A DNA stretch of 64,000 nucleotides, from NCBI GenBank assembly GCA_965113315.1, contig OZ220374.1; one strand, written 5' to 3'. Under the pieces are notes generated by a model. That model did not search any database, was not told the origin of the DNA, and saw only the letters and a program-made list of their open reading frames with translations. Source of the DNA: Podarcis vaucheri. Taxonomy: Eukaryota. Positions 1-60,245 of this stretch are shown here, one piece after another. Numbering within the stretch: the first letter of the stretch is position 1; each line of letters begins with the position of its first letter. A program made the position numbers and the translations under genes.

Positions 1-664
1 TCTTTATTATTCTGGTAAACCGAAGAGAGTTTTCCATTTCAAACATTTCAAACACACTCAACAAAATAAAAGGTCATCATCTCCTTTCACCTGTAACTCT
101 CTTCCACATTTCATTATATAAAGAACTCAAACTAGGACATCGTTCCCACACCATTAATCCACAACTGAAACCTTCTAATCAGCCAGATAAGATGTAGATA
201 AGGAGAATTCTGAACCTTCAGAGGAGCAAATGAAAGCCAATGCACTGTACCTGAAAATTAAACTGAGGTTAACGAACTGCATAAACGAAAACAGAAATCC
301 CCATGGGGGGGGGGGCGGAATGGTTCATCTGTTCCTAGTAAACCCTGGGATCCTGTCTCTTTGACACAGGAAGATATATTTTCCTAACATCATCATTGCA
401 CAGGCTGAATTTAGGCAGCTTTACACACAATCCTCCCACCCAACCCCAAGCAACAAATGCCTAAGGTCACTAACCCTGGTATCTGTGGGGGAGGCCACTT
501 CTCTGCTATATTAAAAAAGAAAGCAGCAGCAAACTTTCGTTTTTAAGTAATCTGCTTTTTGCTCATAAAAAGAAGTCGCTCTTCTCCCCGTTTCTCTTCA
601 GAGTGAAGACCAGGCTAGTAAACAATAGAAAGCAAAGAGTAAGGCTACCATAACTTCCGTCATA

Positions 665-1692
665 GAGCTGCAAAATGCTGATGACAATGTAGTGTGCGCA
701 CACTCACAGGATGACCTCCAAACCATCCGAAATACCTTCACAGAAGCTTATAGAAAAGCTTGGTCTATTCCTCAATATAACAAAAAAAACCCCAAAGTGC
801 TGCACCAACAAGCACAAAACAACCCCCTCTGCAGCACCACAAATCCAACTTAACGATGTGATGTTGGACAGTGTTGATCACTTTTCCTACCTGGGCAGTT
901 ATCCCTCCACAAGGGCTGTAGATGTGGAAATCCTGCATCGTTTGAGCTCTGCAAGTGCAGTTTTCTCCCAATTGAAGCACAGAAGTGTTTGAGGATCAAG
1001 ACATCCACAAATGGACATCATCCAAAATGCTGGTTTACAAAGCTACTGCACCACCAACTTTACTGTACGCTTGTGAAACATGGACCACTTATAAACTTCA
1101 ACTCCTCAGAAGATTCCATCAATGGTGTCTCAGAAAAAATGTGCGTATCACTTGGGAAGACAGGCGAACTAATGTCAGCGTACTGGAAGAAGCGAAGATC
1201 ACCAGTCTCAAAGCAATGATTCTTCAACATCAACTTCGTTGGACTGGTCATGTTGTGCGGATGCCTGATTATCGTCTTCCAAAGCAACTACTCTATTCCC
1301 AACTTAAAAATGGAAAGTGAAATACTGGTGGACAACAAAAGAGGTTTAAAGACGCTCTCAAGGCAAATCTTTTAAAAATGCAGTATAAGCATGGATAACT
1401 GGGAAACACCGGCCTGTGAGCGCTCCAATTGGAGAAAAACCTCTACCAAAGGCGTCATGGACTTTGAAGAAGCATGAACTTAGGACAAGAGGCAGAAACG
1501 AGCTAAGAGGAAGCCATGTTTGGCAAATCCTCATATTGATCAACTCGCACCCAGAAACCTATGTCCTCACTGTGGATGGACGTGTGGATCCAGAATTGGC
1601 CTCCACAGCCACTTACAGACACAACATTAAGACTGTGTTCATGAAAGACAATCTTACTCGGCTACGAATGATCGCCAAAGAAGTAGTAGTAA
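665..1692 (+). mobile_element. RTE-clade LINE, 3' fragment (degenerate RT C-terminal region)
   Basis: Frameshifted pieces read DHFSYLGS, PPTLLYACETWT, LRWTGHVVRMPDYRLPKQLLY, GGQQKRFKDALK and a terminal CPHCG...HSHLQTH; ends in a short (TAG)n tail. Confidence 0.85.
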
Positions 1693-3539
1693 CTGCTGGA
1701 TAGTGTTGGGGGTGCTTATTGACAAGGATAGCAAAATGCTATTTCATTATCACTTCTCAGATGAGACAATTTATTTCTGGTGTTTCAAGAGGAAGCCTAA
1801 CCCTCAAGAGGTGACTTGCATGGAAGCTACAGGAAAAGGGGAATGGCTGAAAACAGCCTCTCTCCCCATTCCAGTGAAGGATGCATTCAATCAACTGAAG
1901 GTCACTTACTGGATATTACCACCCAAAGCAAGCAGAGGAAGGCACCCACCCCAGCTTCTTACTCACCACATTTCTATTTCAAAACATAATTTATCTGCCC
2001 ACCCCAAATACTGAAGCAGCTCTCTGGAATTGCTTGTTCTCTGACTAATGAAAGGGACCAGGCTGACTTGTGGAGATCTTCTCAATGGTCATTTCGTCTT
2101 CTGGCGAAGGACATAGTATACTTCCCTTCTGCTCAACAACCTCAACTCTCTAGTTACTAAATATGAAAGCATTCCATGTAGTTTCATCAGCTATTCTATT
2201 AGCTCTGCTGGGTGCCTTTTGGCTCTGCTTGTCCCACATCCGTCACCTCGTTCAGATTCCCTTAATGGTTTCCATCCTAGGTGGTTGAACTGTAATTTTA
2301 AGAACTGGTGCCAGCATTTCCCTTTTTCCTCCTTTCTTCCCATCCATTTGTCTGTAGACTGGGATCATTTATCAGAGCCTATCTATCATGCAGAATTTCA
2401 CTCACCTGACTAGCAGCAATTATGGCTGGAAGTGAACAGCATCCTCCAGTATTGTCAGCCTCTCACTAACCTGTCCTGAACATAATTTTACTTCCTACAT
2501 TAGTTTAAAACTAGTCAAGAAAAATTATGAAACAAAGCTAGTATATCCAGAATGAGATCTAAAAGCAAAAATCAAACTCAAATTAAAAATGGGATTGGCA
2601 ATACACAAATCATTATTCTGTTTTGTAACCCAATGTAGTTTTTTCCTGTGCAGGCATCCAGTTGCCAGAAATGTTCCTAGAAAACAGTCTTCTGTGAACT
2701 GTGACACTAAATACAGGTTAAGACAAACAAACCTTTTCACTTTCTGTAATGACTCACTCCAAGTGATACAACAGACTTCCACGAGGACATGAAAAACTCA
2801 ATTCAGATTACAGCATCTTGTAAATTGGTAAACAGCAAATAAATACACCCTTAAATGGAGCAAGCCAGAAATGTGATTTGGAATTCTAGCTGCTTTGCAA
2901 CTTCCTAGACTGACGGCTTAAGATTTGGACTGTATCTTAACTGTAATACATGGGTTGCCTTTTCTACATTTTTGGCTCCTTAAGCTTATGACACATTTGT
3001 CCTTTGTCATCTAACTCTCTTGTTGACTTATCTGCATTTCTTTTTACACTGGAACATAATAGTAAGGTGGATGGTAACTTAGCTGCAAGTAACTTCTGTA
3101 TGCTATACAGATTATTTTTTCAAGACCTTTATTTATAAAGCACCAACTATTGTACTGGATGCTATATAAATTAAGAACTAGATAGATCCAGACAACATCA
3201 TTTGCTTCAAGGCTAACTTCCAGCTTACTAAAATGAAACTAATAGTCAAGCTCAGCTTAATATCATTCAAGAGATAATGTGCAGCAGAACAAAGGAAACT
3301 CCCATGTCATACCATATTGGTCTATGTAGCTCAGGACTGTCTACACTGATTGACAGTAGCTGTTCAGGCTTTCAGAAATGAACCTTTCCCAGCCCTCCCT
3401 GGAGATGCTGGGGACTGAATCTGGGACCTATTGTAGGCAAAGAAAATGTGCTGTACCACTGAGATATGAAGCTTGCCATTTCAGACTGAAATTAATCAGG
3501 TCAGGCTTGTATTCAGAATACTGAGCTACTGTGCCCCTG

Positions 3540-6000
3540 AGTGCAAAAGGAAGGGAGATAGTAGTAATGTGGGACTTCAATTACCCGGATATTTGTTGGA
3601 TGTCAAACTCAGCCAAGAGCATAAGGTCAAACAGATTCCTCACTGGCCTTGCAGACAACTTCATTGTCCAGAAAGTGGGAGAAGCAACAAGAGGAACAGC
3701 CATTTTAGATCTGGTCCTAACCAATGTTGATGACCTGGTTAGTGGGGTAGAAGTGGAAGGATCATTAGGCACGAGTGATCATGCTCTTCTGAAGTTTACT
3801 ATACAGCGTAAAGGAGCAGCCAAGCATACTAGGACTCAATTTCTTGACTTTAAGAAAGCCAACTTCATAAAACTTAGGGAAGTGCTGGGTGAGATCCCAT
3901 GGACAGGAATACTAAAAGGAAAGGGAGTTCATGATGGCTGGGAGTTTGTTAAGAGGGAGATAGTAAAAGCACAACGTCAGGCAATACCAATGAGACGGAA
4001 ACATGGAAGGTGCCTAAAGAAGCCAGGGTGGCTATCTAAAGAACTTTTAACTGAATTAAGATTAAAAAAGGATGTGTACAAAAAATGGAAAAGGGGGGAA
4101 ACCACCAAAGAGGAATTCAAACAAATAGCCAGCATGTGTAGACACAAAGTCAGAAAAGCTAAAGCACAGAATGAACTCAGGCTTGCTAGAGAGGTTAAAA
4201 GCAACAAAAAAGGCTTTTATGGGTATGTTCGTAGCAAAAGGAAGAACAAAGAAACAGTGGGGTCACTCAGAGGAGAAGATGGTGAAATGCAAACAGGGGA
4301 CACAGAAAGGGCTGAACTCCTCAATGCCTTCTTTGCCTCAGTCTTCTCCGATAAAGAAAACAATGCCCGACCTGAAGAATTTGGAGCAAATGATTCAGCA
4401 AAGGAAACACAGCCCAGAATAACTAAGGAGATAGTACAAGAATACTTGGCTAGTTTAGATGTATTCAAGTCTCCAGGGCCAGATGAACTGCATCCAAGAG
4501 TATTAAAAGAACTGGCAGATGTGATCTCAGAACCACTGGCAGTCATCTTTGAGAATTCCTGGAGAACAGGCGAAGTCCCGGCAGACTGGAGGAGGGCAAA
4601 TGTTGTCCCTATTTTCAAAAAGGGGAAAAGAGAGGACCCAAATAATTACCGCCCAGTTAGTCTGACATCAATAGCAGGGAAGATTCTGGAGCAGATCATT
4701 AAGCAAACAGTCTGTGAGCACCTAGAAAGGAATGCTGTGATCACCAATAGTCAGCATGGATTTCTGAAAAATAAGTCATGTCAGACTAACCTGATCTCGT
4801 TTTTTGACAGAATTACAAGCCTGGTAGATGAAGGGAACGCAGTGGATGTAGCCTACCTTGATTTCAGCAAGGCATTTGACAAGGTGCCCCATGATATTCT
4901 TGTAAAGAAGCTGGTAAAATGCGGTCTTGACTATGCTACCACTCAGTGGATTTGTAACTGGCTGACTGACCAAACCCAAAGGGTGCTCATCAATGGTTCC
5001 TCTTCATCCTGGAGAAGAGTGACTAGTGGGGTGCCACAGGGTTCTGTCTTGGGCCCGGTCTTATTCAACATCTTTATCAACGACTTGGATGATGGACTCA
5101 AGGGCATCCTGATCAAATTTGCAGATGACACCAAACTGGGAGGGGTGGCTAACACCCCAGAGGACAGGATCACACTTCAAAACGACCTTGACAGATTAGA
5201 GAACTGGGCAAAAACAAACAAGATGAATTTTAACAGGGAGAAATGTAAAGTATTGCACTTGGGCAAAAAAAATGAGAGGCACAAATACAAGATGGGTGAC
5301 ACCTGGCTTGAGAGCAGTACATGTGAAAAGGATCTAGGAGTCTTGGTTGACCACAAACTTGACATGAGCCAACAGTGTGACGCGGCAGCTAAAAAAGCCA
5401 ATGCAATTCTGGGCTGCATCAATAGGAGTATAGCATCTAGATCAAGGGAAGTAATAGTGCCACTGTATTCTGCTCTGGTCAGACCTCACCTGGAGTACTG
5501 TGTCCAGTTCTGGGCACCACAGTTCAAGAAGGACACTGACAAACTGGAACGTGTCCAGAGGAGGGCAACCAAAATGGTCAAAGGCCTGGAAACGATGCCT
5601 TATGAGGAACGGCTAAGGGAGCTGGGCATGTTTAGCCTGGAGAAGAGGAGGTTAAGGGGTGATATGATAGCCATGTTCAAATATATAAAAGGATGTCACA
5701 TAGAGGAGGGAGAAAGGTTGTTTTCTGCTGCTCCGGAGAAGCGGACACGGAGCAATGGATCCAAACTACAAGAAAGAAGATTCCACCTAAACATTAGGAA
5801 GAACTTCCTGACAGTAAGAGCTGTTCGACAGTGGAATTTGCTGCCAAGGAGTGTGGTGGAGTCTCCTCCTTTGGAGGTCTTTAAGCAGAGGCTTGACAAC
5901 CATATGTCAGGAGTGCTCTGATGGTGTTTCCTGCTTGGCAGGGGGTTGGACTCGATGGCCCTTGTGGTGTCTTCCAACTCTATGATACTATGATTCTATG
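3540..6000 (+). mobile_element. CR1 LINE, 5'-truncated, young; open ORF2 fragment (end of endonuclease plus RT)
   Basis: Uninterrupted 796-codon frame with [41 protein letters not shown]; 3' end has CR1 ATTCTATG-type octamer repeats at ~5978-6000. Confidence 0.95.
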
Positions 6001-6504
6001 AGTGGCAAATGGTTCTATACACTTATCCCAAATAAGAAGTTTAACAGGAAGGTACTTTGTGCAATTAAAGCGGCAAAAGCAGAAACTACTTCCTCAAATT
6101 TATCTATCTTCTTCAGCCAAAACATCAACCGATTAATAATTGCTAATAGTTACACGACACACAAACACAGAGGCTGTTTCAGTTTCTTGGGGTTTTTAAA
6201 TCAACATAGGAGCTTTATGAGACATTAAATTCCGAGTTAACAATGTACTCAATGCCACCAAGGTATTCCAGGTTCAAACTCAGTATGTGTACACTACACA
6301 TTACTTGCCATCAGGATACATCAAACTCAAATCACTTGGCCAAACACAAGGTTTTTCCACCACTTTTGGATCATCAACCTTTTCCAAGAAGACTTATTTT
6401 TGCTTAGTTGTATGATTTTGAGTCTCTCACATGTGCATGCTGCTCAGGTATAGATGATTAAGGTTCTCACAAAACAGAGGATGCCACAAATTCCATTTCT
6501 TTCC

Positions 6505-7105
6505 TCTATCTGCCTGCGGACTGTCTCGTCAGAGTGGTGCATGCTCTGATTATCTCTCGCTTGGACTACTGCAATGCACTCTACGTGGGGCTACCTTTGA
6601 AGGTGACTCGGAAACTACAACTAATCCAGAATGTGGCAGCTAGACTGGTGACTGGGAGCGGCCGCCGAGACCATATAACACCGGTCTTGAAAGACCTGCA
6701 TTGGCTCCCAGTACGTTTCCGAGCACAATTCAAAGTGTTGGGGCTGACCTTTAAAGCCCTAAACGGCCTCGGTCCAGTATACCTGAAGGAGCGTCTCCAC
6801 CCCCATCATTCTGCCCGGACACTGAGGTCCAGCGCCGAGGGCCTTCTGGCGGTTCCCTCATTGCAAGAAACAAAGCTACAGGGAACCAGGCAGAGGGCCT
6901 TCTCGGTAGTGGCGCCCGCCCTGTGGAACGCCCTTCCAGCAGATGTCAAAGCGATAAACAACTACCTGACATTCAGGAGACATCTTAAGGCAGCCCTGTT
7001 CAGGGAAGTTTTTAACATGTGATATTTTATTGTATTTTTGGTTTTTATGGAAGCCGCCCAGAGTGGCTGGGGAAGCCCAGCCAGATGGGAGGGGTATAAA
7101 TAATA

Positions 7106-7144
<39 letters not shown>

Positions 7145-7157
7145 TATTATTATTATT
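6505..7157 (+). mobile_element. L2 LINE 3' fragment with (TAA)n tail
   Basis: [10 protein letters not shown]...[14 protein letters not shown]...[14 protein letters not shown]...[15 protein letters not shown], followed by 3' UTR and (TAA)n/(TTA)n. Confidence 0.9.
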
Positions 7158-8939
7158 AGAACAGACACCTGCCAGATTAATGTGTCACACTACAGCTACA
7201 CACACAAAACCCTAAAGTACGCCAAAAAGTAGGGTTACTTTCTGAAGCTGTGGCATTTGATAACCCATCTCTGTCCTGTGCAAAGACTTCAGGACAATCA
7301 GATCATCATCAGCACAGAGCAAACTTAATAAACAAATGGAAAAAAGTAGAATTCATACCTGGGAGAACCTGATTCTAATCAACTACTATCAGTGCTACCA
7401 AGTGAGTGTTATTCATTATACTGATTGACTTTGTCTTGAGGGGTTATTGATCACGCAAACTATCATTAACTTGTTTAGTGCCTGATCAGTTTAGTGCCTG
7501 CTGCAATGACAAGAGGAAAGAACTCTTAGTAAACTGTGTGCTATTGGATTTCCTCTCTTTCAATTCAAGGAACATGCAAGGAAAGGATTGGAATCTTCCA
7601 GTGGGCTCACTAACTACACCTTTTCTATGTACTCTAGTTACCTAGTTATTATAATGCACTCTTCATGATGCTAGCCTTAAAGGTGTTCTGAAGCTTCAAC
7701 TGATACAGAACACTACAAGCAAGTTGCTCATTGGACTTGGTCAGTCAGTAACTCAAATTCTGCTTGATTTACAATAAGCTAAAAAAAAGTAGATAATCTA
7801 TTTAAATTGCTTGTATTCTTTATTTCTGAATCACCTCACCCATAACCAAGATTCTCTGCACAATGCACTATAATAAAACCAATAATTAACTAGAAAACTC
7901 TTAACACAGCACACAGGTAAGTATGGAATTCGCTACCACACGATGTTGCAATTGCCACCAATTTGGATGGGTTTAAGAGAGGTTTGCACAAATTCACAGG
8001 CTATCATTGGCTGCCAGCCATTATGGCTGTATATTACCTCTGGTATTGGAAACTATATGCCTCTGAATACCAGTTGCTGGAAATCACAAGTGGGGAGAGT
8101 GCTATGTGTTCATGCACTGCTTGCTGGCTTCCCACAAGCCTCTGAGAACAGGATGTTGGGCTAGATGGGGCTTTGGTCGGATCCAGCAAGGCTCTTAGGT
8201 TCTTATGCAACACAGAAGCTTGGCTTATACAGAGTCAGACCACTGGCCGATCTAGTTCAACATTGCCTATACTGAGCAAAGAAGATGGTCTACCACTGAG
8301 CTACTGCCAGTCCATACTTCTGCTGCCATGGGAAGACTTTTTAAATCCTCAACACACTGGGGACTAAGAAACAAAAAGACCACCTTCTCACACACGTTAT
8401 CCTGTAAACTCTGGTCATCAGCATCCCAGACACTCATATGCGAAAGAGCCTTTCCAGTTGTGATGCTAAGTCAACACTGTGGAATGTCCTCTCAAGGCAG
8501 GCCCACCAGGTAGTGTCTATAGCTTCAAATGATAAGTGGAAATCTGGCTTTTTCCTGCCCGTAATTCGTACTGGATTGATAACTGCAGCTGTGCTTATTT
8601 TATTTTATTTTATGGTGCTTGTTGTTTATTTATTAGCCACAAGTGTTGGTGGCCCCAGGCACTTGAACAAGAAGGACCAACTTTCTTGAAAAACTTAAAA
8701 AAACTGAGGCAGGCGAGGTTCCATGCAAAGAGTTTTCCAATTCCTTCAAGAATGTGAACAAAGGAATTTTATCAGAAATACCCATAAAATATTGTTCCTG
8801 CTTCCATTGGGGCAGGGAAGGGGAAAGAGGAGATTAAGAACCATAATGCCAATATTTCACTTTTTAAAAAACCTGAGATATGGTGCAAAATGTGCAGGGA
8901 TTGGTGTTATTTTTTGTGAGAAACTAACCTGCTCACTAA

Positions 8940-9276
8940 GAGACGCTGGTGGCGCTGTGGTCTAAACCACAGAGCCTAGGGCTTGCCAATCAAAAGGTCG
9001 GCTGTTCGAATCCCTGCCCACTGCTGGTACCAGCTCCTGCCAACCTAGCAGTTCAAAAGCATGTCAAAGTGCAAGTAGATAAATAGGTACCGCTCCGGCA
9101 GAAAGGTAAACAGTGTTTCCCTGTGCTGCTCTGGTTCGCCAGAAGCTTAGTCACGCTGGCCACATGACCCGGAAACTGTACACCAGCTCCCTCGGTCATT
9201 AAAGCGAGATGAGCACCGCAACACCAGAGTCATCCGCGACTGGACCCAACGGTCAGGGGTCCCTTTACCTTTACCT
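8940..9276 (+). mobile_element. Sauria SINE
   Basis: tRNA-like head GACGCTGGTGGCGCTGTGG, conserved body, (ACCTTT)n tail; homologous to four other copies in the window. Confidence 0.9.
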
Positions 9277-9830
9277 AACTGCTCATTGCTACACTCTGGA
9301 AAAATTACTGCAGACACCCTGACTATGAAGGCAGAGGTTTCCTATGTAACCTATGCTATCTCTGAAGGCTGAAGCTATGAATTCTGGATAATAATCTCAG
9401 ATAATGTATATTACCACCGGTTGTATAAACTAGTCTATAGTGACATTCAGCATATTGTCTTCCACCTTCAGTTTCATTGTTTCCAAAGAACGAACAGAAC
9501 CAATACTCTTTCACAAAGCTTGCTGCAAGGATGACTTAAGACCTTTTCACCATGTGGGAACTGCTTCCCAACCCTAAGAAACAACAGCAAGTGCCATGTG
9601 ACTATTGCACTATTTCTCATGCCAATGTTGCCTTGTCTCTCAAAACAAACGATTCCGTTGGCATTGCAAATAACTGCATCATTTGCTTGGCCCACATAAT
9701 TGTCTATTTCAACCTTATCATCTTGCTCAGTTGTTGTTTTTCCCCACCAGCTTTTGTTTCTAGCATTTTAACTGTTTTTCTTGTTAGTCACTCAAGCAGC
9801 ATTCGGGAAGGAAAGCACAGTACAGACAAT

Positions 9831-9881
<51 letters not shown>

Positions 9882-9963
9882 TTTCGTAGATTTTCACGGG
9901 TACAGGAATGCAGGTTTTGGTGTCTTCGGGTGTCTTCCCGTGTAAGAGTCGGGGTGTCTGTGC

Positions 9964-9997
9964 GACGTTTCGACGAGGTCTCACTCGTCATCTTCAG
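9964..9997 (-). ncRNA. Minimal type I hammerhead ribozyme-like motif (left arm)
   Basis: Reverse complement reads CUGAAGA U GACGAG-UGAGAC-CUCGUC GAAA CG UC. Confidence 0.65.
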
Positions 9998-10707
9998 GCT
10001 GGTGCTTTCGGCTTCTTGTTACTGGAACAGAGCAGAATCTGGTGTTTGAGTTCCTATAAATACTGTTGAGGGGTGTGGTGTATAGCCTCCAACGTTCTGG
10101 GCAGAGAGGAAGTTCCTAGATTAGTGTGCCTTTTCTTCTTTTGTTCCTTAATTACTTGAGGGATATCTTGAGTGATTTCATGAGTGATATTCTGAATACC
10201 ACTGGGTGGGTCATTAAGTGTAGATTAGTTGCTAAAGCTTTTGTGTCTTGACCTCTTGAGCTTGTGAAGAGTTTTTCTGAGAAGATGGCTGTGCTGCATT
10301 TAGTTGTACTCTGGCTTGGCTTCGTGTATAGGGGCCAGCTGGCTGGCACAAGGCACAAAACCACAGCTCGCCCCTATACACGAAGCCAAGCCAGAGTACA
10401 ACTAAATGCAGCACAGCCATCTTCTCAGAAAAACTCTTCACAAGCTCAAGAGGTCAAGACACAAAAGCTTTAGCAACTAATCTACACTTAATGACCCACC
10501 CAGTGGTATTCAGAATATCACTCATGAAATCACTCAAGATATCCCTCAAGTAATTAAGGAACAAAAGAAGAAAAGGCACACTAATCTAGGAACTTCCTCT
10601 CTGCCCAGAACGTTGGAGGCTATACACCACACCCCTCAACAGTATTTATAGGAACTCAAACACCAGATTCTGCTCTGTTCCAGTAACAAGAAGCCGAAAG
10701 CACCAGC

Positions 10708-10741
10708 CTGAAGATGACGAGTGAGACCTCGTCGAAACGTC
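10708..10741 (+). ncRNA. Minimal type I hammerhead ribozyme-like motif (right arm)
   Basis: CUGAAGA core, 6-bp stem II, GAAA, palindromic ACGU in place of stem III, GUC cleavage triplet; stem I only ~2 bp. Confidence 0.65.
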
Positions 10742-10888
10742 GCACAGACACCCCGACTCTTACACGGGAAGACACCCGAAGACACCAAAACCTGCATATA
10801 TATATATATATATATATATACTCTTACACGGGAAGACACCCGAAGACACCAAAACCTGCATTCCTGTACCCGTGAAAATCTACGAAAG

Positions 10889-10942
<54 letters not shown>

Positions 10943-11449
10943 TTACAAAGACGTCTCCTACAGACATTACCAAAGCAACCTGACACTCAGCCACAAAAGG
11001 AGTGATCGTAATTAAGGACCAGCTCTAAGTTCCTTACCTGCATACAGGTCAAAGCTGCCACTGAGCCAACAGATTCTTTCTTTCTTTTTTCTTACCCCGC
11101 CCCTTACACCAAGTAGCTCAAGGCATGGCATTTTGTTGCTCCATTTTATCCACACAACACCCCTGCTTCTTTAGTTCAGGCATGACTCACCCATGGTTAC
11201 CCGGTTAACTTCACATCTGAGGGGGAATTTGAACCAGGGCCTTCCCCATCCTTGTCTGATCTGTTAAGTGGTATACAGCCCTGTGCCGCCTTTAAACATT
11301 CCGGGGGTGGCCTGAGTTCGACTCCTACCCTTTCTGTCCACGTGGAAACCACTACTTACTGCGGTAGCATCCCAGGCACATGGCGCCTTCAACCCGCGAT
11401 CCACACACCATATGGCCACGACATCTCCCACAACTGGCCAGAAATGCAG

Positions 11450-12860
11450 GGCAAGAGGGAGGCGTTGCGCAAGAGTTGCCTCAGCCCTTGGCCAGAGACT
11501 TCTGGCGCGAGGAACAAACTAGGCGCAGCCCCAAAGGGAGCTGCTCGGGCTCCCCATCTGGGCAACGGGAAGAAGGACGGGCTACCTCACGGGGCTGCTG
11601 TGAGGAGGAAGCCCCCTTGGGAAACGAGGAAGCTGAAGCGGGCGCCTTCTGCTTCCTCCAAGGCGGAGGCCGCCTCCCCTCCCGCCTCCCCGGGCAACTC
11701 ACCCCACGTTGGCGGGGCGCTCCGTCGGCGGCGGCTCGGCGCTCTCGCTGTCCGAGGCCGAGGAGCAGGAGGAGGCCGAGGACGACGACGACGACCCCGA
11801 GGAAGCGGACGAGGCCGAGCAGGCGCTGGCGCTGTCGGTGGCGTCCGAGTCGCAGGCGCGCTGGGCGGCGCGGAGGCGGGCGGTGGCGGAGGCGGCCAGC
11901 TGCCGCAGCTCCGGGCCCAGCGCGGGCGGAGGAGGCGGCGGCGGAGAAGGCGCCTCGGAGCCCGTCCGCCCGGCCACGCTCCGCGCCAGCCCGGCCAGCT
12001 GCTGCCGGACGTGCCGCTCCACCTGCCGGGCCTGCAGCGCCCGCAGGCGGCGGCACAGGCTCCGCGCCCGGCCCCACAGAGAGGCCTGCCGGGCCCGCGC
12101 TTCCGCCTGGCGCTGCCGGCGACTCTGCGGACGCCACGGCGGGCCGCTCGCCTCAGGCGCAGCCGCCGCCGCCGCCGCCATGGCGGGCCCGGTCGCAGCA
12201 GCCGCCGCCGTCGCCATGAAGGGAGCCGTCGCCTCGGGGCAGGCCGCTCCGCCTCAGCAGCCGCCGCCTCCTCAGCGCCTCAGGGCGGTCCGGGACTCTC
12301 CATGGACTCCCGGCCGGGACAATACGAGCTCGCCCGAGACGGCGCGCGCGCGCCCGGCCCAGATATTTCCCTCCCAGCCCGCGCCTCAGCCGCGGCGCAC
12401 GCATGCGCGTAGGAGCGGGCCGTCGCAGCAAGCCTCTCTCCTTTCTCTCGAGCGCGCGCGCGCGCCAAACACTCGAGTTGCTGACAGAGCGCGGCCGCCG
12501 CAGCCGATAGAGGGCGGTCGCAGCCGTCTGCGCCTGCGCCCCGCAGCCTCTTTCCCCCCCCACTACTCGCCATCTTGTTACCACGTGAGCACCGGGCGTC
12601 GCTGCTGCTCACGCGCCAACGCGCGACCCTCCCATATTCTCTCTTCCGAGGCAGCAGGAGGTGGAAGGGAAGCTCGGGGGAGACGCATGCGCACAACCGT
12701 GGCCCTGCGCGCCCAGCCTTAACCCAAGCGTTTCCCGCGGGCGCCTGCGCAGTAGCCGCCGCAATTACAAATCAACGCAGGAGCCGTCATTGCTGTTACT
12801 ACGCGTCCTGGGCTGCATTCTCACGAGCATGTTTTCTAGTTCCAGGCGCGCCTGGTTTCA
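11450..12860 (-). promoter_or_regulatory. CpG island / promoter of the KANSL1-like gene
   Basis: Very CpG-rich; NRF1-like CGCATGCGC at 12400 and 12684, YY1-like CAAGATGGCG (- strand) 12568-12577, E-box CACGTG 12582-12587. Confidence 0.75.
11703..12217 (-). CDS. KANSL1-family (NSL complex subunit 1-like) gene, first coding exon; gene continues leftward beyond the window
   Basis: RARSLCRRLRALQARQVERHVRQQLAG and LRAAQRACDSDATDS resemble human KANSL1 [27 protein letters not shown] and LRCSEQAFDSDVTDS (recalled); strong donor GG|GTGAGT at 11703/11702, phase 2. Confidence 0.8.
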
Positions 12861-15005
12861 AACTGCAGCTTAACAAAACACGCAGCTCCAGCGTCTCCCA
12901 GATGCGCACAACAGGCAGGAATTCAGCAGGTGGAGCCTTACCCCAGAAGCATTTCCTCCTGATTTTCTATTATGCATCTGCCAGTAAAATGAAAAATGGC
13001 TCTGCAGGTCAAAGGGGGACCTTATCAATATTTTAATCAATCAAACAAGACATATTAGAATCATAGAATTCATACTTTATCCACTATGGTAATGTAACCC
13101 AACCGCCTGCAATGCAGAAATCTTTTGCCCAATTCAGGGCTCCAACCCAAGACGCGGAAAATGAGTCTCAGACGCTACAGACTGAACTATCCCAGGCATA
13201 AAGAGGACAGGCAAATCAAAGCCAGGAAACCAACCCAAACATTCAAGCTTTAAGCAAGCTAACCTTTTTATAGAATACACAGCAGAATGGGGAGAGTTAT
13301 TCCTGAAAATAAATTAATTTTACCACTGAATACTTGCTTGTGGGCATCTTACCCCTTTTTCACAAAGCCCCAGTGCCTGGACAACCTTCTACTGATTTTT
13401 AAATGGCAAGGTGTTACACAGACCCAAGAAGCTGCCAACTGCTGACCACAGCATTCAAAGGCTTTTCTTTCTCAGTCTTTAGACTAATGTCAACACATTA
13501 GCAAATGAGGTTAATGGCAGGTACCCCTATCCTCATCTCTTAGGTTACAGGGACAAGCTGAAACAACTTTTATATTTCCAGGAGGGGAAAAGAAGCAAGG
13601 TTAGAAGTTAAAGAATATAGTATACAATTTTTCATATACATACTCAAGCCAAGGGCTTGTCTGTATTCACGAGAAACCACATTTGTCAGGCTCCCTCTAT
13701 ACTAACCAAATTGAACTCAGAGTTTTGGAATCACTGCAATAGCATATATCTGTATGAAGGGCAATATACAAACCTCGTGCTCATAAAAAATAAAAACATT
13801 ACAATGTGATCTTGAGCACTGTTACTTGGAGGAAAGTTCAGTTGAATTCCGTGAATCTTACTCCCTGCAAAAAGTGGTTAGAACTGCAGCCTTAGCCTTT
13901 AATATACTACAAAATTTAAAGGTTTTCCAAGCACTAAGAGCTCCTGTGGCACAGTGGGTGGTGTGGTAGTCTAGGCCCTTGAAGACCAGAGTTCAAATCT
14001 ATCCTCAGCTATGAAGCTCACTAAATGAGCTTGGACCCTTCACCGTGTCTCAGCCTAACCTTTCTCGGGAGTGTTGTTGTGAGGACAGAATGGAGAGGAA
14101 CAGCAAGGGAAAGGTACAAGATTAAGATACAAGGTAAGTCACATTTCTACAAATTCTGAAAACAATATAAATGCTACCGATTAGCATGTATTAACTATGC
14201 ACAGCAAAGCAGCAACTAATACTCAGCACAAAGTATATAATAAGCATGGTACATTGCCTGCACTCATTTAGATTGTCATAGTATGCATAACTTTTCAAAA
14301 ATGCTGAAATGTGGCAGAAAAATAAGAATGTGGCTCCGAAGAGTGCTTCATCTGGCCCTTCTTTCCTCACTTTTAAGTATATTATTGCAAGTTATATTCT
14401 GGCAGACATTTCTGGTGGAGGCACCAAAACAATATGTTACTATGTTGCTGCAGTTTGCTGGCGTATATAATTTTGTTCCCATTATTGTTTTGTTCCCATT
14501 ATTGCTCATTTTAGATTGTATTTTAGTTTGTTTGGTTGCTGTATCTTTTTAAAATAAGAGAACCTGTTTCAAATTAAGATTCCTGCAAACTTCACTCAAT
14601 GCAGATGAAATTAAAAATGAAGAATGTTCATTAGCACTGCGTGGAGTTTGCAGGTTTCTTATTTAACCAAGTCTTGCTGTTTTGCCACACTCCTCTTCAC
14701 ACATCCCTCATTGTAACAGATATACAGTAAGCAGGAACTGAAATCCACAACCAAACACTCACAGAAGAGGTGTTCAAATTGCAGCAGAGTGTTGGCCATT
14801 ACTATGTCTACAACCTAAAGCTCCAATTTGCTCATCCCAGGCTATCTGAAGAACTGCATCCTCCCATACGAATCTGCCCAAACTCTGAAACCTGCTTACT
14901 TGGCACTAACTTCCCTTGAACTTGGATTTCTGAGTAAACATGCATAGTGGTGGGCTGTACGAATACATGCCAAGACCATTAGGGAGACCTCTGGGCAGGG
15001 TCTGG

Positions 15006-16415: not shown

Positions 16416-17299
16416 TACAATGTTGTTCACCTCATTGGGGGGCTTTGGGCCAAAAGGTTCTATAGAAATAAACCATAGCGTGTGACGTAGAAGGCATTCC
16501 TGTGAGAGGCTTAATATTCTTAAGGATTCTTACCGTCATGTTACTCCCCTTTCTGACTCGTCCATTTTTGAAGGTCTGGAAGAATTGCGGCACTGCACTG
16601 CAATCCAGGATGAGGCCTTCAAAACAAGCTCCTCCAACTTCAGGTGCATGTTTAATCTGGGGGGAAAGTGATTCCAGGGTTTGAAAGAAATGCACAGAAC
16701 CATAATTTTTCTCAGGACCAATAAATATAAAAAGAAAGTTGTAAGGACCATAATTTAATTAAAGCCATGGAAAATCCTGAGCTCAAAGAAAGAAGGATGC
16801 ACAGCAAACATTTCAACACGAGCGAGTTCCAGAGTTTAACTCAGCACTGTGTACAGTACTCCCTTTTATGTTTCCTGAACCTTCCAACATACACCTGAAC
16901 TGGCTGTAACAATGTTGGAGCGTTAAATGTTACCGCTAATCTTCATGCCAATAAGGGGATTTTGTTTGTTTGTTTGATACAATTCATATGCCACTTGATT
17001 GTATAAAAAAATTACTACAGCTCAAAGTGGTTTATGCAGACATAAAACAATAAAAACGGGGGGGGGGGGTTGCAGCTTTATTTTGAAACGTAAAAAAAGT
17101 TAAAATACGAAAACAGATTAGAGCCGATCGACCTGCTAAATTTCTGCCTGCCACTGCTGAGGGACCTTCAACACCCCACTCGGCCCTTACGTGCGACCTT
17201 CTCTCCACCTCAGCCTATCTCACAGAGGGGTGGTTGTTGCTGTTGTTGTGGGGGCTATTCCTACCAGGCTTTTATTTTATTTTATTACTACCAGACTTT

Positions 17300-17420
17300 T
17301 AGAAGGCAGCCCTGTTTAGGGAAGCTTTTAATGTTTGCTGTATTACAGTATTTTAATATATTTTGGAAGCCGCCCAGAATGGCTGGGGAAGCCCAGCCAG
17401 TTGGGGGCTATAAATAATAA

Positions 17421-17466
<46 letters not shown>
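17300..17466 (+). mobile_element. L2 3' end with (TTA)n microsatellite
   Basis: Matches the 3' end of the L2 at ~6990-7100. Confidence 0.7.
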
Positions 17467-17467
<1 letters not shown>

Positions 17468-17499
17468 AAAGAGGTGGGGGAGAGGGCCAAACCCACGTA

Positions 17500-18480
17500 C
17501 GCCGCCTCGCGCTCCTTGGGGAAGGGGGGGGGATGTAAAGCGAAATAAATAAATAAGGAAGAAGGGAAAAGGGAAAAGGAAAAGAGAAGCAGGCGGCAGC
17601 CCGTCAGGTGAAGCCCAGACAGTTGTAGGCGGGGGGGGGGGACTGAGGGGAGGCGAGTCCCGGGGGAAGGAGAAGGGGCGCCTCACTCACTCACTCACTC
17701 ACCGGCAGAGGCCCGGAGGCGGCACCGGCCTCCTCCTCCTCCTCCTTCTCCTCCTCTCTCTCCGGGCCTGCCCGTCACCTTCCGCCTTTCCCCTCCAAGC
17801 CCCGCCCCCCGCCGCCTCCCATTGGCGTGCTCCGTTGCCTTGGAGAGACGCGAGCGCCCTCCTCTCGCCCCGCCCCTCCCTCCCGCCTAAAGCCCCGGCT
17901 GCGCTTCCTTCCTTCCTCCTCGTCTCCGCTTCCGCTCAGGGACCGGAAGCCGTATCGGCTTGCGCCGCGCGGGGCCTGCCGGGAGCCGTAGTCCCGGCGC
18001 CCTGAGAGGGAAAAGAGCGAGCCGGCCGGCCAGTGAGGGAAACCAGCGACCCACCCACTCGCCGCCTTCGCCCGCTCCCGCCCGCCCGCCCGCCCGTTCC
18101 GCGCAGCCGCCGCGGCCTCGCGCTCCTCCTCCTCCTCGCCCGCCCCCCGGCCAGAGCGGCGAAGAGCAGCGGCGCGAAGGAGGTCGGTGGCCCGTGAGGG
18201 AGGAGGGAGAAAGAAGGAGAATAGGCGGCGGCGGCGGCGAAGAGGGAAGGAAAGGAGCGGGCGCCGCCGCCGCCGCTCGTCAGGGAGGGAGGGAGAGGCG
18301 GACGCAGCTGCCGTGAGGCGCTTCGAGGCGGGGGGGGGATAAATGGGAGGAGGGGGATGCGCAGAGGAGAGGGGGGGCTGTGAGGGGGGAATTAGGGGGA
18401 GGGGTTGGATGTGGGGGGGGAGCAGGCCGAGGGGGACCGTGGTCTTGGCGGTGAATGGCGGGGTGGGCGTGGAGAAGAGA
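17500..18480. promoter_or_regulatory. CpG island; probable bidirectional promoter (upstream DHX30 promoter plus a - strand first exon)
   Basis: GC boxes, ATTGG at 17821, CCGGAAG at 17943, ZNF143/THAP11-like GGACTACGGCTCCCGGCAGGC (- strand, 17974-17994); - strand donor CCG|GTGAGT at 17703; candidate + strand donors GTGAGG near 18194 and 18313. Confidence 0.75.
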
Positions 18481-20911
18481 TGCTTCTTTGGGGGGGGGGG
18501 GAGTGAGAGAAAGAGAATCCGCACGAAGGATGTTTTTTTGGGGGTGGGGTGGGGGGCAGTGACAGGTGTTTGGTCCTGCAATGGGACGACGTTTGCTTGC
18601 AAGGGGGCGCTTTCTCCGTTTTTCCTCCTCGCAACGACAGCCCCGTGAGGTGGGCCAGGCGGAGAGGCAGCCGCTTAGCCCTGCTCCTCATGGTCTGGGA
18701 TGCGACGCTTGGAAGAAGTGGCCAGGCTCCGGATGGATTGGAGGAGGTCTGGGGGGCTTGGTCTGGGGAGAGGGGCCCTCGGGATGGGAGCGCTGTAGGT
18801 GTGTCTGGCGAAGGGATGTTGGTGAGTCTGGCATGGCGATGGAGGTAATCCTAAGAACTGGACCCAGGGTCTGGAGACAGTGGCTTGGCTAGTGATGGAG
18901 GCGAGGTGATGTTGGAAAGAGTGAGAGTAGGGTTGGTGGTCCTGATGCTGAGGGTGACAAAGGGATGTCTTCAGATCTGATTTAACAGCATCAGAGGTGG
19001 GAAGAGCCATGGTTCCGGTGGCAGGAAGGGAGGGTGGTAGTTTGGCAAAAGTTAGTTTGGCAGCTGCATGGATTTCAGTGGGTTGTTGGGAGCGTAAGAT
19101 TTTCTGGATACTGGGTACTGCCTTCTGGAGCAGAATTCTGCTTAAGGCAGTACCCAGCCAGGTGCGTCCGGATGAGTCTCAGTGTTGCTTGTAGACACAA
19201 TTCCTCTAGGTGTAAGAGGAACAGGTAGATAGGTAACAGGAGGTAGTGCATCAGATCACAAGTAGGCATCATTATAGGGGAAGAGGATGGGAGTGAAGTT
19301 GCATGGAATTGGGATGAAATTAGATTCCTGGGGTTCCAGCCTTATTTTAACACTCTCTATGTATAAAAAAAAATGTAGTAATTGCATACTAAACTTGGAG
19401 TAGCTATGATGGGGAAACTGTGAGACAGCTGGCACAATGTTCTTCACTGCATGGCTCTTGAACAACAGTTGTTTTTAAGTGCCCAGCATGTCCTGGGAAT
19501 GTGTGGGCTTGACTCTGCATCGGCTCTTGGATGGGTTTGCAATGACAAAAGGGTGACATAGAAGAGGGCATTTCAGTGGGTACAGGGTTTTTATGCCTTC
19601 ATGGCGGCTCTCACCTACCAAAACTCTTAAATGCCACTGGGACTGGTACATCCTTTGCCTCCACTGATACTGTGATGATCCTGGAAAACATATCTTTTAT
19701 TTGACTGTTGTATGTGGGAACTCTCAGTGGACCTCCATGCGGTCAGCCTTCCTCGGGCACTATGAGAAAAAACCGAATGGACTAAATGTTGCCCAAACTT
19801 GCCCACGTCCTTCTGATCCTCCCAACCAAAGTCCCAAATTGCCATGCCTGTCTTTGGTTACGGAGAACAGCCAGTAGGGATGCTGGCTTCTTTATCAGCC
19901 TCTGCTCTGGGCCTTTAATAGTGAGTTGATGACGAAGATATTAACACAGGGACTCCAACTCTCATCAGCCCCAGACAGCATGGCTAGTGGTGAGGGATGA
20001 TGGGAGTTGTAGTCCAGCAAACGTCGGGGGGGCACCATGCTGGCAACCCCCCATTTTCAGGTGGTATGTCTTGGTATGTCTTAAAAGGCTTCATCTGCTG
20101 GTTTCCTAAAAGTAAAGCTGCAGTTAAAAGTAGAGGAGCAGTCAGGGCAGCCTGGCTTTTTTCAGGTCAGTTGCGATCCCTGCAGCTCATAAAGTCTTTG
20201 AATAATTAAGAATGTCTCTTGGGAATATCATGAGGATTTTTCAATCCCTTTGGTTATACTGAATCTTCTTTCATCCTGATAATCAGCACTACTGGTTAGG
20301 ACCAAACTGTGCTGCTTGGCTTTTCAAACTGTAAATAGCAGCTGGGATGGGGTCAGAACCACAGCAAAGTGGGGAGGCGGGTTTAACACTTTCCTTACAC
20401 TCTTTTCCCCAATGTTTTCTTTAACACCAACTAGGAACTTGGGAGGGATTTTCATGGGTACAAATGGGGGATGGGGTTGCCAAACACAAATAAGCACTGC
20501 TGCTTCTAGTTAAAGTTCTAAAAGGGAAATGTGTCACCAAGTTAAACTTTTTTATGTGGAGCTTTGCACTTGGGATGGGGCATGGCTGAGTAGTTGGACA
20601 AAAGAAAAAAGATCCCAGCATCAATCCCCATCACCTCCCTCTTTAAAGGATCTCTGTAATGAGGAGAGGGAAGTCCACTACGAATTGAGATGTATGTGCT
20701 GAGATGATGGCGTCCTTGGGCTCCTGCGATTTTGAAAAGACTGGTTTCATAGAAAAACCTCCTCCCAGAAGGTCGTTGAAAGGAAACTCACAAATCCCAG
20801 CCAATAAGCCTGACTACATGTGATAATGAGGCATTTGGCTTCCTATCTCCCTCAGAAACACAATATTTACATACAAGTTCTGGTTGGACGGTTGCTTAAA
20901 ATTTTAGTTAC

Positions 20912-21379: not shown

Positions 21380-47024
<25,645 letters not shown>

Positions 47025-55655: not shown

Positions 55656-58632
55656 CTGTATGAGGCCAGTCACACATCTCTAGTCCAGCATCCTGATCTT
55701 GCAGCGGCCAAACAGAAGGCCCAGTAGGACCCGAGCACCAGAGCAGTCTGTCCCCCTGTGGTTTCCCACACCTAGCATTGGTACCTGACCCCAGGTGCCT
55801 GGAGAATCCCTCCTTCCTTTTCTGTCCTGAAGCTTCCTTGGATGGCCTTGTTGAGTTCCAGTATTTCAAGAACATAAGAAGAGATGCCTGTGGAAGTGAG
55901 CAAGCAGAGTTCAAGCGCAAGAGCACCGTGGCTTCCATAGTTCTACCTGAGAGGGGATTTTTTATGTTCTCTTCCACATTAAAAAAAAAATATTTATTTT
56001 GTCCATAAAATTTTCTTTTCCACTTTGTTTGATTAGAATATATGTATGAGATTGTATAGGAAAAATAGGGAATAACAGATACAGATTTGCTTAAAATGTA
56101 TATAGGAAGTGCAGTGTAAGCGATGGAAGTCGATCAATGAAATTTTATTATTGAGATATTTGTAGAATAAATTTGGAAGAAATTCTTCCAGTTTTTCTTC
56201 TTCTTCCAATTTTTCTTCTTATTTTTTCTTTTCTCCCTTTTTTTCTTTTTTGTTCTTTTTTATGTATGTGCGCTTATCTGAAAAATGTATGTATTTGCAG
56301 TATTTTGCTTGTATTTTGTAATAATTATATTAAATAAAATATAATAAATTTATTTTTTTTAAAAAATATATATATTTTAAAAAATAAAGCACCTTGCAGA
56401 TAGGAAAGTAGGATACCAGGGCAAGAATATTGTCTCTGGTGTGATGGTTGCTGCAGGGATGTGCAGGTTTTGTCGTCGTCGTCCCCCCCCCCCCCATGGG
56501 AATCCTTAAATAAATACACCCCCTTCCTTCACTTGCTTGAGGCACCATTCTGCATCCTCATGTGTTACGCCTGCCTTTGCATTTATATCTCACCTTTTCC
56601 TCCAAGGAGCTCAAGGTGGTTTACATGGTTCTTCCGCCTCCCTATAGAATCCTAGAAGAGCAGACTTGGAAGGGACCACGGTGGTCATCTAGTCCTACCC
56701 CCTGCAGTGCAAGAATCTCTTGCTCATCCTGGGGCTCGAACCCACAGCATATATGGTTTACAACATATCCCCACAACAACGCTGAGAGGTAGGTTAGGTT
56801 GTGTGTGAGTGTCTGGCCCAAAGTCACCCAGTGAGCTTCATGGCTAAATGGGGATTTGAACCCAGGTCCCAGTCCGACACTCTCTTTACTACTACACCAG
56901 ACTGGATCAGTGTTCAATAGGGGAGGACCATATGGAAGCAGACAGGAACTGGTGCTTCTAGAACAATACTGGTGGGTTGGGAGATCTGAGCACCCTAGTG
57001 CATTGCCGTTATCGATCATGCAAATAGAATGAGTTTGCATATGGAAACAGTTAAATAATGCCTTTTGACACCCAGATAGCACACAGGTGGTTTATTATTA
57101 TTATTATTATTATTAACTGCAGCTTGAACAGAGAAATTTTGCATTGCCGTTATGTCTTTTCTAGCCTTGGACTAATAATAAAGGCAGTCTGGGACAATGA
57201 CACCCCATCCTCCATCCAGCTATAAAAATCTGGGACAGATATAGATTAAAACAAAGTCCTGCAACCTCCTGACAATCGTCTAAGCCACCCTGAGCAATTA
57301 AATTGGAATGGGGAACTAGGTAATTATGCCATCTGGCGAAAAGCACAGCTTATTGAGAATATGTGATTATATATGCGGCGGGAGGGGAGTGGGAGAGCTC
57401 CCCCCTTTTATAAATGGTTGCAGTCGAAGTGTTTGCTGGATATTCAACAATTGCAGCAGCCTAATACCCCCGGGGAGAGCCTGTAAATCTGGAAGCCCTT
57501 CCTGAATGGTTAAAGTAGCACCAAACTCCGTTTTTAAAAGTCGACCGTAATATGTCCGCTGGAGAAAATGGAGGACTTTAATTACAGAAGGTTTTGTGCG
57601 CGCATGAGATTGGAGGAGAGATTATGGAGAGAGCTCCATCCTTTCCTTGGTAGATAATATTCCGCCTCTGCTGACTTGAAGTAAAGCAGTTTCTCTCTTG
57701 GTGGCACCTAATACCTTTAAATTTGGAAGGTATACTGTTGATCAGATCAGTGTCGGAAACATGGAAGAAGGTTTCGTGGACCCTTTGCTGGAGCTGTGGG
57801 AGGATAGAAATACTTGACAGGGATTCTGCTTCCAATATCATCCGTGGCACCTCATGAAGCATTGCCAATGTCTCCATCCTCTAGTTCTGCTATTTGAAAG
57901 GAAGGGTTTTTTAAAAAATGGAAAGGCAATTGGATATATAATTTGACAACAAATTAGGAGGGGGATTCCTTATTTTGTATTTTAGTATTGTGAACTGACC
58001 TGCCCTCTTCAGATGGAGGGCAGTATACAAATAAATAAGCAAATGGAAAACAATGGAAACCATCAGGACTTCTTGACAACCGAGAATCAGCTTTTTAAGG
58101 ATTTGGTTTCTTGTGCAGTTGGATGCTTAGACTGACTGCAAGCTATGTTTTGTTCTAGGGTGGAGTTAATGGTTCTGAGCTCTTAACCAGTTACACGTTT
58201 GAATTGCAAGTGCTTTCTGGGAAAGAAGGTGTAAGGCTGCAAGGGAGGGTCTGCCGTCTAATAGGAGCAGCTCACAGATGTGTAGAGCTGGAAGGGATCC
58301 CAAGGCTCATTTCATCCAACCCCCGCAGTCAAAATGTGCACCTCCGGCCATACTCTGTGGCTCTGTTTTGTCTATGGATGCCTTTCCTTCTTTCCAGCCC
58401 ATCCATCTACCATGCTCCTCTCTTGACTGGCCCTTCCCAGCAAACACAGAGAGAGCCCTCAATTCATAAGAGCTAGAATCATAGAATTGCAGACTTGGAA
58501 GGGACCCCAAGAGTCATCCAGCCCAATCCCCTGCGAGGCAGGATGAGGCCTGTGAGGGCTGTCACCATCACACCCACTAGCAGTGGGAACTGTCCAGAAC
58601 TCCATCCCAGGTTCCCTTTCTCGTTGCCGCAG

Positions 58633-58753
58633 GTGATGTTTGAAGACGTGGCCGTCTATTTCTCCTCGGCGGAGTGGGCAGAGCTAGCAGAATGGCAGAA
58701 GGACCTCTACCGGGCCGTGATGGTGGACAACTATGAAGCGGTCACCTCGCTGG
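58633..58753 (+). CDS. KRAB-A box exon of a KRAB zinc-finger-type gene
   Basis: [41 protein letters not shown]; AG and G|GTAAG boundaries. Confidence 0.92.
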
Positions 58754-60245
58754 GTAAGGATCTCTCTCATTCCCTGCTTGGGTGTCCTTTGATGTTCCTG
58801 AGAGCCTGGAGACAGCAGATAAATGATTCTGGCTTTGCAGGGTTTGCTGTGGGGACAGGATCTCTTTGTTGAACTGACGTGGGGGCTGACGAAACTTTTT
58901 GTTTGACTTTAGACCAGCGTTTCACCAACTTGGTTCCTGCATAAGAGCATCAGATGGCTGCCAGATGAGGCCAAAGAGAGCACATCTTGTCTGCTATCAG
59001 ATTCTCATGGTGGCTAAGCCAGATGCCTGAGTGGGAAGCCTGCATGCAGGACCAGATTGCAACAGCAGCAACCCTCCCCATTTGCCATTTTAGTTCATTG
59101 CATTTATATCCTGCTTTTTCCCTCCCAAGTTGCTCAAGGTGGCTGTAATGGGTATGAGTTACTCGTGCGTAAGTTGGTGCCTTTTTCGGTTAATTTGCCT
59201 TGTTAAACCTTTCTGACTGCACAGCCCCTTCTCATCGCGGCTGTCTCAGTCACTGGCAGAATCCGTCAGTGGGCGTTTCTTGAACCTCTTCCAACATAAA
59301 AGTTGTCTGACACCCAGTCTCCTCCTCCTCTCACTGCGCGGGAGTCTTCTGCGCAGGGAAGGCGTGGGTAGCGGAGGACCTGGGCTCTCCTCACTGATGT
59401 CCAGTGAAGAGTCCTGGAGCCCTCTCTCCAATTCCCCCGTCTGCCCCCCTTTATCCCTGGTGTTGCGCTGATTGGCTTCCCCCTCTACTGAGCTGTTTCT
59501 CCCCCTGCTGCTGGGTCCTTCGCCAGCATCATCAGGGAGCCTCCCCTTCGCCTCTCCCTCCGATGTCAGTTCCCTGACAGTGGCGTACGTCGTTCTCCCC
59601 CTCCTCCTTTAATTCCCACAACAATGCTGAGAGGTAGGTTAGGCTGAGAGGCAGTGACCGGTCCTAGGTCACCCTGTGAGCTTCTTGGCTGAGTGGGGAT
59701 TTTAACCCTTGTCTCCCAGGTCCTAATCCAGGGGACAGTAAGGTTTCCCCTGAACATGTCCCCAGATGCTGTGGATACAGCTGGTTCCCTCACTTGACAG
59801 TCCATCCAGGAGGAGGCTGCTGGATAGCCTTCTGTAGGTATCCTGGCATGGTATACAAGAACCGATAAGCAACCTGGTACCTAGAAAGGAATGCTAGAGG
59901 GATGCTCTTATTTATAACCCTAGGTTGCTAGTATGATTTGTGGGAATGTTCAGGGTGGCAGGAGAGGATATATTGTTTGTTAATATCCTTATTAACTTGC
60001 GTTAGCAAGTTTCTTTACTTAGCAGAGTGCATTCCCCTTTACACGACAGAAAACTAGTTGCAAACTCGTGTGAGTTTCTTAAGACAATGCACAATTCAAT
60101 CTGGCTTGTCCTCATTGTGTTCGAATATTTTCCTGGTAAGACCCCTTGAATCCCTTCTAAAAGAATAAAGACACCACAGTCTTATTCATGTGTAAGACAT
60201 AGCTTAGCAGGTCTCGTGTAAATCCAGCAGAGTTGAAATAGAGTA

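Follow-up and report, generated by a model that had tools for sequence, protein, structure and literature searches.

An exon beside DHX30 in the lizard Podarcis vaucheri very probably opens a third vertebrate KANSL1-type gene

Human and mouse possess, to our knowledge, only two genes of the KANSL1 type, KANSL1 and KANSL1L. A stretch of 64,000 nucleotides of Podarcis vaucheri DNA (contig OZ220374.1, assembly GCA_965113315.1; here called the window) carries on its - strand a G+C-rich exon with blocks typical of this family, placed next to a helicase gene on the opposite strand. The locus thus raises the question of which KANSL1-type gene begins here. A first-pass annotation, made by reading the letters of the window, had proposed a third ohnologue standing head-to-head with DHX30. 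From homologues, trees, transcript contigs and the surroundings of the exon, we consider it very probable that the coding sequence of an expressed lacertid gene, made up of several exons and encoding a third vertebrate KANSL1-type protein, begins with this exon. The gene is an uncharacterised member of a known family, the KANSL1 family. Coordinates of all features discussed are collected in Table 1.

Table 1. Positions of the features of the locus within the 64,000-nt window, in order from its left end
Feature	Position	Strand	Evidence or remark
Intron 1 of the KANSL1-type gene	1..11696	-	at least 11.7 kb; extends past left window end
CR1-type LINE ORF	3531..5921	+	796 aa; antisense in intron 1
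Inverted repeat in intron 1	9879..10890		arms of near-perfect repeat, about 1 kb in all
First ORF pair of the inverted repeat	10126..10251 / 10454..10579	+ / -	identical translations
Second ORF pair of the inverted repeat	9908..10069 / part of 10636..10986	+ / -
CpG island spanning exon 1	11000..13000		GC per 1-kb bin
Splice donor GTGAGT, phase 2	11697..11702	-	sequence and transcript contigs
ORF, 172 aa	11699..12217	-	ATG at 12217-12215; stop at 11699, passed over via splicing
Coding part of exon 1, third KANSL1 paralogue (very probable)	11703..12217	-	sequence, ORF, homologues, transcript contigs
5' untranslated part of exon 1	12218..12315	-	contig ends
35-base element	13099..13133		very high summed depth
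CpG island	17000..19000		GC 0.54-0.66, strong GC skew
CpG island	26000..27000		GC 0.69
ORF with a presumably DHX30-like internal peptide	26052..26537	+
DHX30, mapped coding exons (taken to be DHX30)	35174..41410	+	tblastn; further DHX30 exons to right
DEAH helicase exon	38531..39340	+	protein comparison
CpG island	51-52 kb
KRAB box exon	58495..58872	+	Pfam, 66 bits

The coding part of exon 1 measures 515 nt, that is 171 codons and two bases, up to position 11703, and its ORF translation yields the coiled-coil block (QARQVERHVRQQL; ...RRLRALQARQVERHVRQQLAGL...), together with CDSDATDS and then a serine-rich tail. The exon had originally been drawn as a - strand exon with two KANSL1-type blocks and a phase-2 donor, and both blocks, the donor GTGAGT and the length were found as described. 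Its assignment to the KANSL1 family held as well, the coiled-coil and DSDAT blocks being present and a profile search recovering KANSL1 and KANSL1L over them. In an alignment of ten proteins of the family, residues D122, S123, D124 and T126 of the DSDAT block are invariant. A word search matched exon 1 to a turtle protein with an E value of 1e-29, and the same frame was matched in proteins of ibis and hoazin, the hoazin match carrying the name KANSL1-like; in two bird proteins the hallmark KANSL1 block follows beyond the match to exon 1. Between 11 and 13 kb the GC content of successive 1-kb bins is 0.634 and 0.686, versus about 0.40-0.44 in the flanks. When bird and turtle homologues were used as tblastn queries, exon 1 only was recovered and exon 2 was not found within the window. 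The remainder of the gene from exon 2 on, including the exons of the WIN motif and the PEHE domain, lies outside the window, past its left end.

For the exons beyond the window we used a protein of Podarcis muralis as a stand-in (P0234, 'KAT8 regulatory NSL complex subunit 1-like isoform X2', a RefSeq model of 820 aa), found when the koala member was used in a word search. Exon 1 is 97% identical to residues about 1-173 of P0234, the differences being mainly repeat lengths, and the sequence of P0234 past ...PANVG is the junction observed in the transcript contigs. Judged by this agreement, the window exon and the P. muralis model 'KAT8 regulatory NSL complex subunit 1-like' are the same gene. 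The WIN motif and the PEHE domain were read in orthologues, the P. muralis model foremost, the window itself holding exon 1 only. A PEHE domain (Pfam PF15275) is present at residues 592-676 of P0234 with 87 bits against a cut-off of 34, and the koala and penguin members also pass. A WDR5-binding motif, which the first-pass annotation had named together with the PEHE domain as a feature to be sought in the full gene, is present in P0234 with the WIN residues A-R-x-R-P: in its WIN-type block SCVAARIRPICRYRKRR, A373, R374, R376 and P377 are invariant across three paralogue clades in the ten-protein alignment. In human KANSL1, Arg592 of the WIN motif enters the pore of WDR5, the motif's further conserved residues being Arg594 and Pro595 (PMC4018492). 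A sequence search of the PDB with exon 1 and P0234 returned just low-complexity chance matches; KANSL1 peptides deposited there have fewer than 20 residues.

The order of blocks in the protein (coiled coil, DSDAT, helix, WIN motif, FHPILS, PEHE, VQPWE-R-FPL) is like that of KANSL1, and KANSL1L, of the same family, has the same blocks, WIN motif and PEHE domain included. Residue identity is nevertheless only about 36-37% to KANSL1 and about 29-30% to KANSL1L, and after the WIN motif this gene reads RP-x-C/R-R-Y-R/K-K-R where KANSL1 reads RPVLSCKKR. A further likeness is to MSL1, the scaffold of the MSL complex, a disordered protein that combines a coiled coil with a KAT8/MOF-binding PEHE domain (PMC4018492); MSL1 was not among the relatives found, and the two are likened by description only. 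The conserved residues suggest that the protein would likewise be a disordered scaffold, in which the PEHE domain would hold KAT8 and the WIN motif WDR5, as in KANSL1 (PMC4018492).

To place the gene within the family, a profile search of 1.8 billion representatives was performed and gave 398 relatives, for 30 of which names were obtained. A FastTree phylogeny of the 113 longest matches defined the groups, and the main trees, on 51 rows and 838 columns, comprised a quick PMSF tree and an IQ-TREE analysis under LG+F+G4 with SH-aLRT/UFBoot support and constrained searches for the AU test. The PMSF and LG+F+G4 trees agree on the groups. True KANSL1 (Narcine, Rhinatrema, Erpetoichthys, Xenopus tropicalis and Gadus) and true KANSL1L (whale shark, caecilian, gecko, pike and wrasse) are each recovered with SH-aLRT/UFBoot values of 100/100. 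The group of the window's gene (94.5/95) contains penguin, koala and other marsupials, three amphibians, coelacanth, lungfish and electric ray; within it the species tree is recovered and the window exon pairs with Podarcis. Its sister is a group of ray-finned fish (bichir, paddlefish, bowfin, gar, Albula and knifefish), the two together being split from all else with 96.9/97. KANSL1 joined to these two clades is in turn split from KANSL1L, the lamprey group of one protein and the invertebrate proteins (scallop and others) with 98.8/100. The gene is thus the sister paralogue of KANSL1 in the tree, yet forms a separate clade on another chromosome, and the KANSL1L clade lies outside the two. The two paralogues found together in each of six species were always on contigs of differing size, which we read as different chromosomes. 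These trees make the gene a paralogue in its own right, whose age is at least that of the jawed vertebrates.

The ray-finned-fish sister clade is long-branched, and its members are named KANSL1, KANSL1-like or uncharacterised. The zebrafish genes kansl1a and kansl1b may be old ohnologues instead of teleost duplicates.

The origin of this paralogue has to be considered together with its neighbour. The + strand DEAH helicase exon shares 67% identity with 'DHX30 isoform X3' of Pelobates, against about 50-54% with DHX36 and DHX9 proteins, and we take the helicase to be DHX30. Its nearest solved relatives are MLE, DHX9 and DHX36; the NCBIfam search on the helicase exon gave only the bacterial HrpA and HrpB, and the ESM Atlas search on the DHX30 exon only generic helicase clusters. 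The KANSL1-type gene and DHX30 point away from each other with no further gene evident in between, in agreement with the head-to-head arrangement proposed at first. The CpG island at exon 1 may be a promoter shared with an upstream first exon of DHX30. A distance of 23 kb separates the KANSL1-type exon from the closest DHX30 coding exon that was mapped, and further CpG islands, at about 18 and 26 kb, intervene, so that such sharing is only a possibility.

On the human gene map DHX30 lies beside MAP4, with MAP4 directly after DHX30. MAPT is paired with KANSL1 and MAP2 with KANSL1L, which lies near MAP2 in human, and MAP4 stands with MYL3 at 3p21 without a KANSL gene; the label 'third paralog' has been given to KANSL3 (PMC4815063). 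The sole hint of synteny in other species comes from Pelobates, in which DHX30 and the member of the clade are on equally long contigs. The argument for the MAP4 paralogon follows from the published pairings and the human map: the gene would be the copy linked to DHX30, and hence to the MAP4 region, and would have arisen alongside KANSL1 in the early genome duplications of vertebrates.

Alternatively, an equally ancient third paralogue could stem from an early segmental duplication or translocation, independent of 2R and of the MAP4 paralogon, so that its adjacency to DHX30 would be secondary. In the KANSL tree KANSL1L stands outside KANSL1 and this gene, an order that differs from the MAP tree, in which MAP4 was the first to split from MAP2 and MAPT (PMC4815063). 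This discrepancy speaks for such an event, as do the lack of MAP4 within the window, in which no MAP4-type PGGG repeats were found, a lamprey protein without a firm place in the tree, and a synteny read in one genome. Against it, the paralogues are on different chromosomes in the six species mentioned, the duplication is older than the split between cartilaginous and bony fish, and both the positions of the other paralogues beside MAPT and MAP2 (PMC4815063) and that of DHX30 described above fit the paralogon. We regard a segmental origin as quite improbable. Of the third ohnologue claimed by the first-pass annotation, the separate clade from sharks onward stands, backed by the AU tests given below; an origin of the duplication in a whole-genome event is a proposal.

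The separate paralogue was weighed against the two known genes of the family. NCBI calls several members of the clade 'KAT8 regulatory NSL complex subunit 1' (Sarcophilus, Chelonia, Pogona and Xenopus laevis), and KANSL1 is the nearest paralogue in the tree, as would be expected if the exon belonged to the lizard KANSL1 orthologue, or to a tetrapod or sauropsid duplicate of KANSL1, with a shortened N-terminus. However, the KANSL1 clade excludes this gene, and forcing its tetrapod members together with tetrapod KANSL1 cost 414 log-likelihood units (AU p <= 9e-8). Moreover, Rhinatrema, Narcine and Xenopus tropicalis carry this gene and a separate KANSL1 on another contig, both genes occur in sharks and rays, and Erpetoichthys possesses KANSL1 along with the ray-finned-fish counterpart of this gene. 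Identity with KANSL1 is highly improbable and was rejected on the trees, the AU test and the species that carry both genes.

The automatically assigned '...subunit 1-like' is close to the official name of KANSL1L, and this similarity might suggest a lizard orthologue of the latter. The position of the well-supported KANSL1L clade outside KANSL1 and this gene argues otherwise, as do the 140 log-likelihood units lost when the tetrapod members were forced together with tetrapod KANSL1L (AU p 5e-76) and the presence of both genes in Paroedura and the whale shark (Rhincodon). Identity with KANSL1L, to which we attach hardly any credence, was rejected by tree, AU test and co-occurrence. The gene therefore groups inside neither KANSL1 nor KANSL1L, the trees and AU tests giving a separate clade.

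Expression of the third paralogue was followed in assembled contigs from four runs of a close relative, guessed to be RNA, which were aligned to positions 10950-13400. Exon 1 is covered by a contig in three runs from two studies, and in all three the contig departs from the genome exactly at 11703. Two long contigs (1462 and 2108 nt) match the genome within 11703-12315 and run on for hundreds of letters past the junction. In the other direction they extend about 95-100 nt upstream of the ATG, to 12312 and 12315, a minimum for the length of the 5' UTR, as contigs cannot set the true transcription start. The first 30 off-genome letters, in frame on the - strand, encode the ten residues that follow ...PANVG in P0234, and the sequence past the junction in the transcript contigs encodes the next exon of the family (...AERQWA...). 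Because the contigs leave the genome at GTGAGT and then enter the next exon in frame, they are spliced transcripts, and the runs are RNA here. Exon 1 is transcribed and is spliced at the predicted donor to the next exon of the family. The W-x-WLQA exon that had been expected downstream was thereby traced, its start (AERQWA) in the contigs spliced at 11703 and the whole block in P0234. In addition, all six indels that distinguish the contigs from the window within the coding part have lengths divisible by three (6, 9, 12, 9, 3 and 6), which is weak support because they sit in triplet repeats. An explanation by an accidental ORF, or by a first exon without coding function within a CpG island, is scarcely credible and was rejected, since, although several frames hold long ORFs in the G+C-rich DNA around exon 1, so that ORF length alone is no evidence for it, and although exon 1 alone gave no family in Pfam and no usable match, with a low recognition score, in the ESM Atlas, its reading frame is kept from marsupials to lizards and the transcript junction keeps that frame into a conserved next exon.

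Upstream of exon 1, numerous short contigs from each of the four runs pile up on a 35-base element (Table 1) and give it a very high summed depth. The element probably belongs to a strongly expressed SINE or tRNA-derived repeat.

The N-terminal part of the protein distinguishes the amniote members. The DSDxT block lies at residue 123 in the window exon and at residues 89-165 in amniote members of the clade, compared with 157-433 in amphibian members, 286-541 in those of lungfish, coelacanth and shark, about 400-460 in most full-length rows of KANSL1 and 316-460 in KANSL1L. From these positions by group it follows that the short N-terminus is derived in amniotes and is not a trait of the whole clade. 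Amniote members have only about 45 residues ahead of the coiled coil versus about 290 in KANSL1. The early description of an exon much shorter than its KANSL1 equivalent was right in substance, and the compactness of the N-terminus, borne out by the DSDxT position, is common to amniotes. The N-terminus of KANSL1 is reported to bind PHF20 and MCRS1 (PMC6607013, a review), and most of this region is absent in the amniote members of the gene. The amniote protein would accordingly be expected to have lost its contacts with PHF20 and MCRS1 and, being shortened in this way, may build a complex that is reduced or otherwise different. It is conceivable, though rather unlikely, that the amniote paralogue shed the N-terminus recruiting PHF20 and MCRS1, kept the predicted docking of WDR5 and KAT8, and could so build a distinct, reduced KAT8 complex with targets of its own; that this complex was lost in placental mammals; and that the NSL complex of human and mouse is a simplified state and not the vertebrate norm.

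The distribution of the gene was read from the best 120 matches to the koala protein, all of which belong to the clade of the window's gene. Among them are full-length mammalian members from echidna and seven marsupials, and, from other amniotes, proteins of many turtles, of tuatara and of many lizards and snakes. The birds among these matches comprise palaeognaths, penguins, storks, pelicans, raptors, owls, cranes, flamingo, loon and cormorant; the anamniotes comprise some thirty frogs, a caecilian, the coelacanth and about a dozen sharks and rays. The clade also includes lungfish. The first reading, according to which the gene was kept in reptiles and lost in mammals, does not agree with this distribution, given the echidna, the seven marsupials, the birds, the amphibians, the coelacanth, the lungfish and the sharks that carry it. 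Placental mammals were absent from the best 120 matches to the koala protein. As an orthologue there would be expected near the echidna (E 1e-263) and above the turtle (E 6e-200), the gene would appear to have been lost in placental mammals. Landfowl, waterfowl, songbirds and crocodilians were also absent from the best 120 matches; these bird and crocodilian absences could stem from the ranking, from gaps in the assembly of G+C-rich DNA, or from additional losses.

The gene as such is not new. It is already modelled as 'KANSL1-like' in well over 100 public genomes, and the novelty implied by the first-pass annotation did not survive comparison with public annotation, which includes the near-identical P. 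muralis model. The RefSeq/Gnomon models named 'KAT8 regulatory NSL complex subunit 1-like' (P. muralis; koala XP_020854863.1) correspond to the same gene under an automatic, generic name. We found no study in the literature searched that treats these gene models as a distinct third KANSL1 paralogue, and the literature found on the NSL/KAT8 complex concerns fly, human or mouse throughout. A third scaffold gene has very probably been conserved for more than 400 million years in lineages between sharks and marsupials and would then have been dropped in placentals; most vertebrates may therefore have a further scaffold for KAT8. The gene would fill the empty KANSL slot in the MAPT / MAP2 / MAP4 paralogon (PMC4815063). 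It would also offer a natural case of subunit loss, open to study in chicken relatives, Xenopus, opossum and zebrafish relatives. The value of these findings is tempered by the existing public annotation, and loss of one ohnologue in a single lineage is common.

Several further features of the window concern its architecture. Between exon 1 and the mapped DHX30 exons, the CpG islands at 17000-19000, with its strong GC skew, and at 26000-27000 may be alternative first exons of DHX30. An internal peptide in one + strand ORF (Table 1) resembles what we take to be the first exon of the mitochondrial DHX30 isoform. To the right of the mapped DHX30 exons there are a KRAB box exon, at 58.6 kb, and a further CpG island; gene order on this side of DHX30 may differ from that in human. 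Intron 1 of the KANSL1-type gene contains a near-perfect inverted repeat flanked by (TA/TATA)n-type repeats, the arms of which give identical ORF translations on opposite strands, as in the two ORF pairs of Table 1. The same intron also holds, among other repeats, an intact-looking CR1-type LINE ORF in antisense orientation, which encodes an endonuclease and a reverse transcriptase (Pfam RVT_1, 121 bits).
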